Assembly (NCBI RefSeq): GCF_000150275.1
Contig: NW_002060948.1
Span: forward strand, 2,472,180-2,536,179
DNA: 64,000 nucleotides
Direction of reading: 5' to 3'
DNA from: Trichoplax adhaerens
Taxonomy: Eukaryota > Animalia > Placozoa
The translations under genes were made by a program, and so were the position numbers. Below the pieces are notes generated by a model. It made no database searches and had not been told where the DNA came from. It saw only the letters and a list, made by a program, of their open reading frames with translations. Shown here in pieces: positions 19,001 to 33,700 of the stretch (position 1 is the stretch's first letter; every line of letters starts with the position of its first letter).

Positions 19001-22000
19001 CCGTGCTAAAAACACAACTGATTAGTGACGGTGCTGATGCTGATAACGTTTACTACCCGAACCTTCACAAACAACATTCTCTTTTTGCTGGAACGCAAGT
19101 TTTGCAAGCCCGTTCATACAGTTCTTCTCTTGTAACTGCACTGGTTATACGCACAGGTCAGAGATTATCGTAACGTCTTGATAAAATTCTAAATTTTAAG
19201 AAGTGTTGCGTTTGCCCACTCTGATAGGATTTTATAGTATGAAGGGTAATCTCGTGCGTAGTATTCTTTATCCTAAGCCCATGAACCTAAAGTTGTACCG
19301 TGACGCAATTGGATTTGTAGGCTGCTTAGCTTTTTTAGGTAATTAAAAATTATTGTATACTCGGTAGCCCATATCATCGTAAGCATTATGATTTGCGTTA
19401 ATATATTTAAGCTGATTCTCTGTGAACTAAAATTGCTTTTTTAAATATCTTTGATCTAGCGCTCATTGGTTTGATTTATAGCATCGTAACTCTTATTATT
19501 GATGGGGTATTTATAAATGATTATCTCCTTTTCTACTTACATATATAAATATCTTCAAGTGCGTTCTGCATTATTCATACATAGGTAACGCCAGGCGAAG
19601 TTATTAAGCGAGCATTGGACATGATCACAATTGCTGTTCCACCAGCTCTACCAGCCGCGGTTTCGATTGGAACTGTCTATGCCACGAATCGACTTAGAGT
19701 AAGAGGCATTTTTTGCATCAATCCTTCAAGGTACTTACTACTTTAATTTTTAAAATCTGAAGCTTTAAGCTGTCAACTTACGTAGATGTTCATAAAACAA
19801 ACTTTAACAGCATTCTTTAAAATTTTAATTTCGCAAAGGATCAATTTGAGTGGTAAACTCAATTTGGTTTGTTTCGATAAGGTAAGAGCGCATGTGTTAT
19901 TTGCATACTCTAGAAACAATTCCCAGTTTTGTGATAATTAAATCCTTCCTTAAGACCGGAACGTTAACAGAAGACTTCTTGGAATTTTGGGGAGTAAGCA
20001 GCGTTAAACAAGGACGGTTAGACATCAATCAACTATAATTTTAACTTTTTATAATATTTATTAAGGGAATTGTTAATCAACGTTGTGAAACGATGTCTTT
20101 TAGCTTTAGGGAAATATTGACTGATATTAAATCTAATCCAGCTGATAAGCTAGCGGTTACGATGGCAACTTGCCATTCATTAACAGTTCTTAAAGGTGAT
20201 GTGTGTGGTGACCCCTTAGATATGCAAATGTTCCAAGCAACGCAATGGGTAGGAAACTTAAATTGGCTTTAGCAATCTTCTTGCGTTAGTTAGCGTTACT
20301 GGTATGAGACACAGATCTTAACTTCTCGATACATTAACATCACAGACCTTAGACGAAAGTGCTGACGATCATCAAAAGTACGATACCGTTATTCAAGCAA
20401 GCGTAAAACCTCCAAGTTCTACACCCACAACCAGTCAGGTAGCGTCTTAATTTCTTCAGAACTACCAGCAACCTATTCACACCGTCATCGCTCAAATATT
20501 TGCTTCCCCAATATGCATTCATATCTGGCCCACATACTTGCTGATAGAGTAGCTATTTTATTCTTTCCTTTATTCGTTATTTTAGAACCAATTTGAATAT
20601 GGGATTTTGAAACGCTACGCTTTCACCTCTGACTTGAAGCGCATGTCAGTGCTCATTCGTAAGTTAGGAGCTGGCAACCTAGAATTAGTTATGAAAGGAG
20701 CCCCCGAAACAGTAATACAATATTGTAACAGCAGTTCAGGTACGTTGATACCAATAAATGTAATTCTGTTAATGATGGCATTTTATTGCCTTTCATAGAA
20801 AAGATTCTTATCATACATTCTACTGTAGTCCCTGACGATTTCTCTCAAACGTTGGAGTCACTTACGGAACAAGGTTACAGAGTGCTCGGTTTGGCTCATA
20901 GATCTTTAGATTCAAAACTTTCATGGCGATCTGCTCAAAAACTCTCACGGTAATATTTTTACGATGCCGCTTGCAAGGATAGCTGTTATAAGTTTTGCTT
21001 TCTATTTATAGACAAGACTTGGAAGAAAATATGACCTTCCTCGGTTTACTGATTATGCAAAACAAATTGAAGCCTGAAACATCTGGAATAATAGAAGAAC
21101 TAGCTGAAGCGAATATTAGGACTGTTATGATTACTGGTAAAATAGTTTATATCATTGATTTTGATTACAAAGTTTTAACTCTCAATGCATCAAAATCCAA
21201 CATTACAGGTGATAATCTGAAAACTGCTGTCAATATTGCTCGAGAATGTGAAATGATACAACCAAATGAAAATGTTGTACATTTAATTGCTAAAGAACCT
21301 ACGACCTCTCAAACTGAACCAACTGTCACATGGAATCTCTTAAAGAAAAGTGGGAATGCACCGGTAAAGATTTCCATAAAATATGATAGTAGTTAATTCA
21401 TAGTTGAAAGATAGTGACAATAGTAGCAATTGTATAGTAACTGTAAATTAATTCTAGGTTCTTTCAAGTGCCCAATATTATCGCCCTACAAGCGATCGGA
21501 TCGCATGTACTGGTGACACTGTTTCAGTAATTCAAAAATATTTACCAAATATGCTTGAAAAGGTCAGCTAAGCAACACGGATATTATTGTTATTTATCTA
21601 TCATATCACGCTCTTCACATGCATCTTCTTTAATGTTGGTCAGGTGCTTATTCAAGGAACTATTTTTGCTCGAACATCACCAAAACAGAAAGCTGAACTT
21701 GTAGAAGGCTTCCAAAATCTAGGGTAACTAACAGTTATGGATTTATGATATTCCGGTATGATAATAAATTTTGCTCTGACGGAGTCTCGTTGGAAATCTA
21801 TTGTTAACGTAATTCTCCACTTAAATTTAAGATACTACGTTGGAATGTGCGGCGATGGAGCTAATGATTGCGGAGTTAGAAAATACTAATAAATTCGTAC
21901 TTTAAAGATATTAAAGAATAACGTCATATGTAATTAATTCGACTTAGGCTTTAAATACTGCTCATGCCGGAATATCCCTTTCGGAGGCTGAGGCTTCCGT

Positions 22001-29412: not shown

Positions 29413-30153
29413 CTAATGGCGTCTTGAAGTTTCCGATTGAGTTCTATTAGTGGGTGATGCAGCAGCACGTTCTTCGGGTATCCCATTCATACAGCCACAT
29501 CCAATGCGATTCTTCTGTGTTCGTTTGAAAGGTAACTTTTGACCGGCTCTTAACAAGCTATAGGAAATGCTTTTATATCCTTCATGGGCTACGCAAGTTT
29601 TAATAGTGTCGGGGCAACAATTTTTGTAATCGCATACGACACAGCGCTCTGGTATAGCAGTGTAAAATACACTTTCACCACCTGATAGTTGCTCATCTTT
29701 ATCGAAGTTGTAAGGACATAAGTGATCTTGCTCTACTACCTGGCAAGCTCCTTGTAAGATTTTACCATAACGAGCCGATTGCTTGACGGTGCCACTATCT
29801 TCCGAATCAGGCAAATCTAATCGGCGTGGAGACCCTTCCTGTTCTTCTAAAATATTTTTCTCTTCATCAAAACTAGACGGATTATTTGCCTCTATGCCAT
29901 GCTCTTCAGAAATCAAATTACCCGTGTGTCGCGGATATGAATAGCAAATGCCAGAAAGAGCTACTAATGCTACAATAGCTACCTAGAAAGACAAAAAACA
30001 TTTTTCAAAATGAACAAGAAATGAATTCATAAAAGCCAACATCAACTTTAAGCACCACATGTGGTATCCATTTTCTTATGCACATCGTGAGTCTTAATTA
30101 GAAAGCCTAATCACATTAATCAAAGACTTTACCTTAAAAGTGGAACAATTCAT
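29413..30153 (-). CDS. Secreted cysteine-rich protein, putative cystine-knot cytokine/growth factor precursor (~196 aa)
   Basis: Exon 1 30153-30133 (MNCSTFK|gtaaaag) splices in frame to exon 2 29982-29413 (ttctag|VAIVALVALSGICYS...). This gives a signal peptide, an acidic pro-region and a 9-Cys domain ending in C-G-C. Confidence 0.8.
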
Positions 30154-30731
30154 AGTTGTAGTAATTTGTCGTTTTAACTCTTCAATTAAAATCAATTTAT
30201 TCTCTAGATTGTCAAGCTGGAGAGCTCTATCGGTGGTGTATGGACCAGATTAAACCTTAAAAGCAGATAGTATTAAAGTAAGAAAAGAGGAGAAAAAATA
30301 ACCTTTTAACTATAATAACTTCCTATCGTAATTCGATACTAGCATATTCCAACAGAATGAAAATTTCATGTCCATATAGTGATCGTGAAAATTGCATTAA
30401 TATAGTCAGAACAAATGCGCTCATTAGTTAAAGTATCTGTATATAGTAGTCGTCAATTAAAATTCTTTTTAACTTGACGAATGTTTACTTACAAATATAG
30501 GCTACTTCTGAATTTCCAGACGAACTGAACGTAAAATAACGTTTCTCCTCAACTTAAGCGTATTATATAGAGACATGGAGCAGGTGCAAATAGAATAAAT
30601 ATACACCAGGTGACTACTTAATCGACAAGTTATGAATTGATTTTTGTTACAAAATTGGCAATTGTAAATAACCACGGAAGTCAATGAGTTTACATATATA
30701 GCAAACTAGACATGTCAATTATTACCTTCTT

Positions 30732-30779: not shown

Positions 30780-33700
30780 GTTGAATATTTCAATTCTCTA
30801 ATTAACTTACTGAGATACTTATTAAAACTTATATATGGATGTCATCAAGCATTTCCCAGTTTGAGTTAAGATTTGTATTCAATTAGGCATCCGGTCATGT
30901 GGCGAAAACAAGAATTTTTTCGTTTTACTTGAGTAAGTTAACTATGAAGTCAAGCATTGGAATGATATTAATAAAACAAGTTCGTCCACAGTACCTAATT
31001 TCCTAATTTAACTAAATTAAGAGAATTTCATCTCTAAAATAACTGCACAAGAGAGATCGATAACGTGATAGATAATTATATTTATAGAATATGGTAAAAC
31101 TGATTTCCAATTTTATACTGTCTTGACTATCAGGCTATTTTGATCTATATTTTTTAATAATTACTAAAATGGAAATTGTTTTTTAAACCAATTCTTACAT
31201 TATTAGTGTTGATTCTATCTATCAAATAAGGTATACAGATTGAAACCAATAACAAATTTAGGATTTAACATCCAATGTCTATACGTATTAACTTTATTAA
31301 AATATAATTTACAATGGCATATTATTCTAGAGCTACTTTGTATATTACAATTTGTATTAGATGTTTATTATTATTATTGTACGAAAAGGATAAATAAGTC
31401 AATAATTTTCATCGACATCATGTCGAACTAAACTTTGACATTTTTTTCTTATTTTATTCTCTTCAATACCAAGCAATAAAATAATTGAAGTTTTATAGTC
31501 ATAAAAATGAATTCTACCGGTATCCATTGACTACAAAAATGAATTAATAAGCATCATTCCTGTATCAGCTTTTACCCTCTGCTGTCTAGCCGAACAGAAA
31601 CAGATTACAGTAGCCTATATGTCAACGATGATTTTATACAAATACCTTAGAAAGGTTTATCAGCTTCTTTGACTTACTCCTTTAGCAGATATTCTCATTT
31701 TTTTATTTTTTCTGTGCTGTACGTCAGCAAAATCAAGGGAGAATAAAATTTGAGAACTTACTACTTCATCCCGTCATGATAGCTTTCGAGTACATCCGGT
31801 ACTAGAAACAGATCGAGCATGTAGGGCCAAAATCCCAAACTTAATCATATCATCATCTTTGTTGATAATATAAAACGAATGACAAAGCTATCCTTGAAAT
31901 AGAATTATTGTCAGATAAATCAGAATAAAAACTACTGTCTAGGAGGCATCGGCGTTGATCCATTTTATATTTTAGTAGACATTACATTGCGTTACATTAA
32001 ATCATATTACGAATGCATTAAGAGAGGTAAGATCGTATCTTTTAAAGGAAGCATATTGTCCTCAGTTGAGTGATGCATATTGTTGTTAGAGTGAAATAAT
32101 TAGTACAATAGAATTCCTTTTTAAGAAGGAGATTCAAAATCAACCTTAAAACAGTATATCCTTCACGATCTTCTCAATTATTGTAGAAAAAATGAATAGA
32201 AAAATATAGATTCTCATAATAATGACATCATCCAATGAGAATGACGATGAGATCAAAGTGCAATGACACAGTCATCCTTTATTGAAAACGAATTCTGTAA
32301 TCTACGTAATTTTACACTTTACAGTCGGTTGATTTTATAAAATAAGAGAAATTTTAATTTTTTCTACCAAAGTTAGGATATGAGTTATGAATGCTATCTT
32401 TCAACTATCGGATATTCATGTAAACTATCTATCATCTTACGTTTTAGCAAATTGTTCATGTTTAGCAATTAACGTCCATTTTATCTTATTTTATTGTATA
32501 TTTATATTTTTACGAATAGATTCATCTTTCTTGTATCGGAATTAATAAATAAAGTATAGCTAACAGCAATCTTGTCAAATAACACATTAGGATACCTCAT
32601 CATAACTATTATTGCATGAATTTATTTTCTAATTTTAATTATTGTTTGATTGTTTGCTACAAGTATACTTTCAATAGTAATTAATGTATTAATCAATTGT
32701 GATAACTAACATTGCCTAATAAAATTAAACAACTGATGGCTGCAAACGATCATAAAAATATTCATACTTGACAAAGGTAAAAGTCAATAAATTACTATTG
32801 CAAACAGTTAGCCTATATAGTATATTTTTTGTCTAAATTTAAATGCGTACGTTTATTTATTATAACAATATATATACATTTAAATTCCATTTTAAATATT
32901 TCAGCTTGCATGTGCAATCGACAATACCATAATAATATCTTTTAATTGTATATTATAATATAACAAAGCCGTGCTTTATTCTGGCTGGAATGTAACTTAT
33001 ATTTATATACAAATACAGATATATAATAAAAAAATTCATTCATCTTGGATAGTATTGACGCAAGAAAAAACAGTAACAATTAAAACATCAATTTATAAGT
33101 CAAATTAATTTACAGCACGATAACTTATTTTAAATGATGACGACCGGAATTCATGAGCGCAAAGCTGCATCCACGCTATTTACCTCCAAGAATTCTCACT
33201 TAAGTAACAATTAAAAAAGTTTCTAATACTTAGTTACCTTCATAAATGACACTATCAATATTCCATACTATCTCCAATGGCAACCTAATATCAAGTAAAA
33301 GTGGTTAAACTTTTTATTGACCTGAGCATCTTCATGATTGAATAAACTTAATGCATGTTCCAGCAAATTAATAATCATTGAACAATGATTTACTGAGTTT
33401 ACTACAGCAATTTAAATGAGGTCATTTATTAATAAATCGCGTCACGGATGATAGCTGAATTACTAATAAAAAAAACTGAGATATATTATTTTTACGTAAC
33501 ACTAATCTATCAATTTAGTCTACATTTTACGTCATGCTTCAATACACGATAATTTTCATATTTTAACAATAGTTCCTTAATTATAGGCTATATTTTTAAC
33601 CTTAATTATAACAGCATTAATAACATTGTTGAATTTGCTATGTTGTTATTAAGCAATCGACCTTACTAGTATGTCAATTATGATTTAAATTAATCTTATT

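Follow-up and report, generated by a model that had tools for sequence, protein, structure and literature searches.

A spliced gene for a small cysteine-rich protein

We analyzed a 64,000-nucleotide stretch of the Trichoplax adhaerens genome (contig NW_002060948.1, positions 2,472,180 to 2,536,179, hereafter the window), which is AT-rich eukaryotic DNA with a GC content of 0.26-0.38. The minus strand carries a two-exon gene for a small cysteine-rich protein, whose features are listed in Table 1. The ATG at 30153-30151 opens a seven-codon exon immediately followed by a donor GT at 30132-30131 (GTAAAG), while a pyrimidine-rich tract and a TAG at 29985-29983 (AG at 29984-29983) precede exon 2, which spans 29982-29413 and comprises 189 codons and a TAA. 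The spliced product has 196 residues, with a predicted signal peptide followed by an acidic, poorly conserved segment and a core containing nine cysteines. Splicing is required to provide a start codon, because an in-frame TAG abuts exon 2 on its upstream side and the sole in-frame Met of this exon lies near the C-terminus; a start within an unspliced reading frame was ruled out on the same grounds.

Annotation of the gene, short exon included, goes back to the T. adhaerens genome, yet the gene is uncharacterized. An identical 196-residue model (P0001) is deposited as XP_002113690.1 / EDV24164.1 under the name "predicted protein", and the same model is present in Trichoplax sp. H2 as RDD43250.1, "hypothetical protein TrispH2_005106". 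UniRef100_B3RZ94 gives the protein the automatic name "PDGF family profile domain-containing protein", and we found no paper citing its accessions. The original prediction, made from the letters of the window, held that a seven-codon first exon restores a signal peptide and hides the gene from view. The exon is confirmed by the splice sites, by P0001 and by the same exon in two relatives (see below), but the gene is not hidden, being present in GenBank and labeled with a PDGF profile in UniRef. Since the first exon is below searchable length, exon 2 alone was used as a query, and full-length analyses relied on P0001, which equals exon 1 joined to exon 2.

Table 1. Features of the two-exon gene and its upstream region, in window coordinates
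Feature	Position	Strand	Evidence
Coding exon, start codon and seven codons (MNCSTFK), predicted n-region of the signal peptide	30133..30153	-	N-terminus of P0001; counterparts in L003 and L005
Intron, 150 nt, GT...AG, phase 0	29983..30132	-	Same length, phase and termini in L003 and L005
Rest of the predicted signal peptide, residues 8-22	29938..29982	-	Hydrophobic maximum, -3/-1 rule, conserved motif
Acidic segment, residues 23-61, ending in R60-R61, possible pro-peptide	29821..29937	-	Composition, pN
Conserved core, residues 62-176, nine invariant Cys	29476..29820	-	Alignment, dN/dS 0.11; Atlas neighbors cover 84-178
C-terminal tail, residues 177-196, with sequon and invariant R-R-H, plus stop	29413..29475	-	Three-lineage alignment
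Conserved non-coding upstream block, candidate promoter or proximal enhancer	30560..30722	-	84% identity over 161 nt with L003

The gene is single-copy and under purifying selection in placozoans

Only two further relatives were found in a word-indexed sequence collection: P0002, from ENA metagenome assemblies, and P0003, from Logan assemblies (SRR30664516/7). Their database gene calls begin at internal Met codons, short of the true start. The contigs that encode them nevertheless carry the upstream exon of seven codons, translated as MDYSMTK in one contig and as MNYTMTK in the other, at 811-831 of L003 and 2683-2703 of L005, followed by the 150-nt phase-0 GT...AG intron (832-981 and 2704-2853, respectively) and, after it, the rest of the predicted signal peptide. 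Across the window, L003 and L005, the interior of the intron is poorly conserved, in contrast to the splice sites and the ends of the exons, which are kept. The DNA on both flanks is collinear with the window, and L003 and L005 are therefore orthologous loci.

We then compared exon 2 of the window, L003 and L005 by Nei-Gojobori counts. In comparisons of the window with either relative, synonymous change has reached saturation; pN is 0.13-0.16 in residues 60-176 versus 0.28-0.30 in residues 8-59. Between L003 and L005, the core has a dN/dS of 0.11, the part comprising the signal peptide and acidic segment 0.29, and the tail 0.40. The gene is thus under strong purifying selection, which falls mainly on the core. 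Across the three lineages, none of the nine core cysteines varies, nor does the block G-T-V-K-Q-S-A-R-Y-G-K-I that precedes the first of them.

Broader searches recovered nothing more. When the three sequences were combined into a HMMER profile and compared exhaustively with 1.84 billion proteins representing a set of 15 billion, only the orthologues P0002 and P0003 came back; a scan of JGI metagenomes with the three-sequence alignment yielded no further relatives; and a search for paralogues in the genome of Trichoplax sp. H2, a check proposed with the original prediction, found none. Weak paralogue matches were rejected as a broken frame (L002 and L022), a repeat (L023) and a rhomboid-like open reading frame (L024). 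The locus is a placozoan gene that is functional and present in a single copy.

The precursor has features of a secreted protein

The most hydrophobic nine-residue window of the protein starts at residue 8, with a Kyte-Doolittle value of 3.34 versus 1.51 elsewhere. This stretch (residues 8-16) is preceded by a single Lys (Lys7), and Cys and Ser occupy positions -3 and -1 ahead of Tyr23. Cleavage is predicted after Ser22 (C-Y-S / Y-P-R-H), within a motif, C-[YH]-S-Y-P-R-H, that is kept in the three lineages. This N-terminus fits a cleaved signal peptide, and the earlier description of the gene as a spliced, secreted precursor holds for the splice and the hydrophobic N-terminus, from which secretion itself is predicted.

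Residues 23-61 contain 9 Asp and Glu versus 4 Lys and Arg. At the end of this segment R60 is invariant, while residue 61 is Arg in two lineages and Gln in the third; the R60-R61 site (SPRR) coincides with the start of the conserved region. An acidic pro-region ending in a dibasic site had been proposed. Its acidic composition is as described, whereas furin-type cleavage is weakly supported given the R-Q of the third lineage, and processing near R60-R61 is best regarded as a possibility.

A single N-glycosylation sequon is found in each tail; in P0001 it is N186, and those of P0002 and P0003 lie at the corresponding places. The C-terminal R-R-H (29413-29424, minus strand) is invariant in the three lineages even though the tail is the least constrained part of the protein (dN/dS 0.4-0.7), and may serve in processing or binding.

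The cysteine framework combines features of two families

The core cysteines are arranged as C87-x8-C96-x24-C121-x2-C124-x4-C129C130-x6-C137-x31-C169-x-C171, an exact match to the pattern first noticed in the window, C-x8-CP...C-x2-C-x4-CC-x6-C-x31-CGC. Comparators were collected through DNA pattern scans, which supplied parapoxvirus VEGF-E genes, simian-sarcoma v-sis and one invertebrate IL-17 (L020, 221 residues, metagenome contig JAAUXV010142970.1). A word search with the viral alignment added vertebrate VEGF-A and PDGF-B, and 16 non-primate or viral PDGF/VEGF sequences were used. Written in the same way, the placozoan framework is C-x8-C-x24-C-x2-C-x4-CC-x6-C-x31-C-x-C, that of the 16 PDGF/VEGF sequences is C-x23-26-C-x5-C-x2-CC-x6-C-x32-43-C-x-C, and that of L020 is C-x9-C(P)-x21-C-x-C-x2-C-x12-C-x14-C-x17-C-x-C. 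Under the scheme of Pfam clan CL0079, with a threading disulfide and a ring closed by a C-x-C strand, six positions are compatible with knot cysteines and invariant in the three lineages.

With PDGF/VEGF (VEGF-A, VEGF-E, PDGF-B/v-sis), the placozoan protein shares the order of its last eight cysteines, the spacings C1-x24-C2, C5-x6-C6 and C7-x-C8, the CC doublet, a Pro two to three residues ahead of C2 and a Val after it. It differs in the ring segment, which is x2/x4 and lacks Gly, whereas x5/x2 and the Gly are invariant in the 16 controls, in one extra N-terminal Cys, and in a C6-C7 interval of 31 residues versus 32-43.

Other features are shared with invertebrate IL-17, as represented by L020. 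Both are secreted-type precursors of about 200 residues with the domain at the C-terminus and nine cysteines in that domain. C96-P-Y corresponds to the C-P-aromatic motif, for which vertebrate IL-17 has S-P-W, and an extra Cys lies 8 residues upstream (x9 in L020). The C124-x4-C129 ring spacing recalls the C-x-C-x2-C of L020, x4 from first to last, and the domain ends in [IV]-x-C-x-C-hydrophobic (C169-x-C171 in the placozoan protein), about 31-32 residues after the threading Cys. Unlike IL-17, however, the placozoan protein has a C-x2-C-x4-CC cluster in place of C-x-C-x2-C, and has no Cys in the loop of hairpin 3-4. Among the motifs defined by Huang et al. (2015), motif 1 (DPNR[IYF]P..[IL].EA[RK]CL) and motif 3 (LN[SC]VP[IV]YQ.ILVLR) are absent from it, and the tail of motif 2 is only approximated, by I-[GQR]-C-G-C-M (PMC4517768).

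There are also resemblances to the Spaetzle, NGF and trunk/PTTH ligands in the succession of predicted signal peptide, variable pro-segment and C-terminal knot-like core, and to Spaetzle in the odd number of cysteines, while the ring spacing of NGF differs from that of the placozoan protein. The statement that the protein mixes features of IL-17 and PDGF/VEGF was accurate, with C-P-Y, C-x4-C and I-G-C-x-C-M on one side and the eight-Cys order, x24, CC-x6-C and C-x-C on the other. Membership can be claimed for neither family.

A probable placozoan-restricted cystine-knot-type ligand

Taking these observations together, we favor, with somewhat better than even confidence, a secreted cystine-knot-type ligand that forms its own placozoan-restricted family within the cystine-knot cytokine and growth-factor superfamily. 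The 196-residue product would enter the secretory pathway and lose a signal peptide of 22 residues, and the acidic N-terminal segment would perhaps be removed near R60-R61. The core of about 115 residues would probably fold as a domain of the cystine-knot cytokine/growth-factor type, in which C96-C137 would thread a ring made by two disulfides joining the C121/C124...C129/C130 cluster to C169-x-C171. The odd Cys left over would be free for an interchain bond in a dimer, which is probably the state of the ligand, and the mature protein would act extracellularly.

The sole positive evidence on the fold, and a weak one, comes from neighbors in the ESM Atlas. With the whole protein as query, the top clusters by language-model features were annotated IL17, NGF, Spaetzle or Noggin (0.92-0.87, with 186-189 of 256 features shared), and the ten best named hits came without exception from the cystine-knot cytokine clan. 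With the core, an "Interleukin-17 domain-containing" cluster came first (0.90, 188 shared features, 9/30 hits), followed by Spaetzle/IL17 and NGF/Spaetzle clusters, so annotated, at ranks 2-3. In structure, the core as modeled by the Atlas itself lies closest to IL17F, with a TM of 0.59 by query across 80 residues; seven PDGF/VEGF clusters come next, at 0.44-0.50. IL-17 is thus the top neighbor of the core by both features and structure. By these model-based criteria, the low-confidence structural neighbors included, the closest relatives would be ligands of the IL-17/Spaetzle/NGF type; by cysteine framework they would be PDGF/VEGF.

Several results weigh against the cystine-knot interpretation. 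AlphaFold2, given the three-sequence alignment, yielded no confident monomer structure, with a pLDDT of 32.3 for the full length and 36.7 for residues 80-178, and its models place a helix where a hairpin is expected. The cystine-knot fold that had been suggested is therefore not borne out by AlphaFold2, and the Atlas model is the only structural hint, with a pLDDT of 0.45, itself a low confidence. An ESMFold2 homodimer of residues 62-181 scored 0.00, a value that carries no weight on binding in either direction. Being of one source, the two ESM-based lines provide leads rather than a test, and a feature score of 0.9 is reached by 4-10% of shuffled proteins.

Comparisons of sequence and profile point the same way. 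A Pfam scan of the exon-2 product found no family at E<=10, and PDB sequence and profile searches found no relative of solved structure, the only match being a spurious one to a coronavirus spike (E 0.3). Aligned with hhalign, the placozoan core reached a probability of 0.7% against an alignment of six viral PDGF/VEGF sequences, over 25 columns around C-V...CC-x6-C, and 1.5% against the single IL-17 seed. A hidden Markov model of the 16 PDGF/VEGF sequences scored the placozoan proteins at -0.8 to -2.7 bits, and Smith-Waterman comparisons with PDGF/VEGF gave z values of -1.2 to 1.0, both within the range of shuffles. With IL-17, the best z was 2.1, in one lineage and unreproduced in the other two, again within shuffles. 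Together with the metagenome and paralogue searches above, these negatives bear out the proposed orphan status at the sequence level and make the protein placozoan-restricted there, with placozoan-type orthologues alone among the 1.84 billion representatives and a genome free of paralogues.

Alternative assignments of the protein

The most serious alternative, although an unlikely one, is a true but highly divergent PDGF/VEGF (PVF), which would form an antiparallel disulfide-linked dimer and act on a receptor tyrosine kinase with Ig domains. Eight of the nine cysteines map one-to-one and in order, with x24, CC, x6 and C-x-C identical to VEGF-A and VEGF-E, P-x-R-C-V at C2 resembles the P-[PSR]-C-V of the family, and the strongly conserved segment before C1 corresponds in position to the N-terminal helix of PDGF/VEGF. 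PDGF/VEGF clusters occupy rows 2-8 among the structure neighbors from the Atlas, and the automatic name of UniRef100_B3RZ94 carries the PDGF family profile; this name is the only, and indirect, evidence for a match to PROSITE profile PS50278. Against this, PF00341 (threshold 27 bits) did not match the exon-2 product at E<=10, nor anything across the whole genome, whereas a control VEGF-E scored 82 bits. The pattern PS00249, which we take to be P-[PSR]-C-V-x3-R-C-[GSTA]-G-C-C, matched 0/3 placozoan proteins versus 14/16 family controls, and the x5/x2 ring and its Gly are absent. The hhalign probability was negligible and the family model stayed within shuffles, and no PDGF cluster appeared among the language-model feature hits. 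A phylum-wide survey also places the earliest PDGF/VEGF in Cnidaria, leaving placozoans unmentioned (Rauniyar et al., 2023; PMC10328876). If this assignment were nevertheless true, the origin of the family would predate the placozoan-cnidarian-bilaterian split.

The same negative homology tests, the failure of AlphaFold2 to find a fold, the low confidence of the Atlas model and the chance rate of high feature scores would also be expected of a secreted cysteine-rich protein with another fold or role, such as an antimicrobial or defense peptide, a matrix or adhesion factor or a protease inhibitor, whose likeness to knot cytokines comes from cysteine spacing and composition. We consider this improbable. 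The full-length and core feature searches returned cystine-knot cytokine clusters only (188-189 shared features), the structure neighbors of the core are nearly all IL-17 or PDGF/VEGF, and the terminal hydrophobic-G-C-x-C about 31 residues past a lone Cys is a hallmark arrangement of the superfamily. The PROSITE-based UniRef name adds independent evidence. Should the protein be merely a lineage-specific cysteine-rich protein, the finding would be a minor annotation point.

A glycoprotein-hormone, bursicon or DAN-type knot hormone acting on an orphan leucine-rich-repeat G-protein-coupled receptor of Trichoplax is highly improbable: the ring region of GPH alpha also has a CC doublet, but the placozoan ring segment, C-D-Y-K-N-C-C, has neither the C-x-G-x-C motif nor a Gly, Pfam families of the Cys_knot/DAN type gave no match at E<=10, and no such cluster occurs among the Atlas neighbors. 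In favor of this assignment are the Burs/GPH-like peptides reported in placozoans (PMC4079206) and the 46 such receptors (LGRs) of T. adhaerens, 41 of them lineage-specific (PMC9545775).

Candidate receptors

Neurons and tissues, as usually understood, are absent from placozoans, whose behavior is nonetheless coordinated by secreted signals. Their repertoire of cytokines and growth factors bears on when the cell-cell signaling systems of animals arose. For the cystine-knot-type ligand proposed here, the first candidate receptors are the SEFIR-domain membrane receptors of Trichoplax, and the second a receptor tyrosine kinase. In Trichoplax sp. H2, a SEFIR transmembrane protein and a SEFIR-death-domain adaptor have been described, with no known ligand (Kamm et al., 2019; PMC6321704), and a conserved, constrained, single-copy, predicted secreted protein with a knot-like core is a concrete candidate for this role. 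We located SEFIR matches in the genome at L007 (G000:C1414:6761542-6761997, 30.9 bits) and L008 (G000:C1390:206086-206280, 23 bits). The L008 match is interrupted by two in-frame stops, perhaps because an intron lies there or the copy has decayed. The ectodomain families IL17R_fnIII_D1/D2 had no match in the genome, in agreement with the same report (PMC6321704); this counts against the reading favored here.

We regard it as quite unlikely, though worth stating, that the protein is a ligand of the placozoan SEFIR receptors and a very divergent early relative of IL-17. It has no match to PF06083 (threshold 24 bits) at E<=10, whereas L020 scores 73 bits on this family. A search of the genome with PF06083 was also without match, but controls were equally silent in that search. 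Since a word search started from L020 recovered nothing but L020 itself, there were too few sequences for a profile of the IL-17 family. IL-17 has been reported absent from T. adhaerens (Huang et al., 2015; PMC4517768). If the protein did pair with SEFIR receptors in this way, IL-17-type signaling, documented to date only in Bilateria, would predate the placozoan-bilaterian split.

A pairing of the Spaetzle-Toll type was rejected, since placozoans are reported to be devoid of true Toll-like receptors, as found in Trichoplax sp. H2 (Kamm et al., 2019; PMC6321704). For VEGFR or PDGFR in Trichoplax, the literature offered nothing usable. The original prediction had presented the protein as the best candidate in the window for an undescribed signaling system, which is premature for a protein whose receptors are themselves candidates.

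Upstream non-coding DNA and genomic neighborhood

A conserved non-coding block of about 165 nt lies ~410-570 nt upstream of the ATG (Table 1). Its identity with L003 exceeds that of the coding exon, which is 72% with saturated synonymous sites. Within it lie a TATA-like box (30562-30569), a pair of CACCTG E-boxes (30581-30586 and 30607-30612) and an ETS-like ACTTCCG (about 30676-30682), plus TAATTGACA. The block is probably a tightly constrained promoter or proximal enhancer of the gene.

About 70 nt after the TATA-like box, the minus strand carries a consensus donor, GTAAGT, at 30492-30487. A conserved pyrimidine tract and AG acceptor lie at about 30257-30256, ~100 nt before the ATG (TTTTAAG in the window, TTTACAG in L003 and L005), and several upstream ATGs are found between the two. 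The transcript may thus have an extra 5' non-coding exon within about 30256-30540 of the minus strand, in which case the seven-codon "first exon" would actually be the second.

Farther upstream, three collinear blocks (31200-31450, 31774-32086 and 32500-32792) are 66-74% identical to L005. The second contains a match to the C/D-box snoRNA-like family sn2317 (31874-31939, plus strand) that reaches 25 bits, below the gathering score of 50. Regulatory elements, exons or small RNAs are alike possible for these blocks.

Downstream of the gene, a block at 23754-24127 matches the far end of L003 (54% translated identity over 67 residues, E 2.5e-19) and is probably an exon of a neighboring gene, showing conserved gene order. 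Inspection by eye of an open reading frame fragment at 20995-21396 (plus strand) revealed a P-type ATPase-like motif (…IRTVMITG…), which makes the fragment a probable exon of a gene for a cation-transport ATPase.

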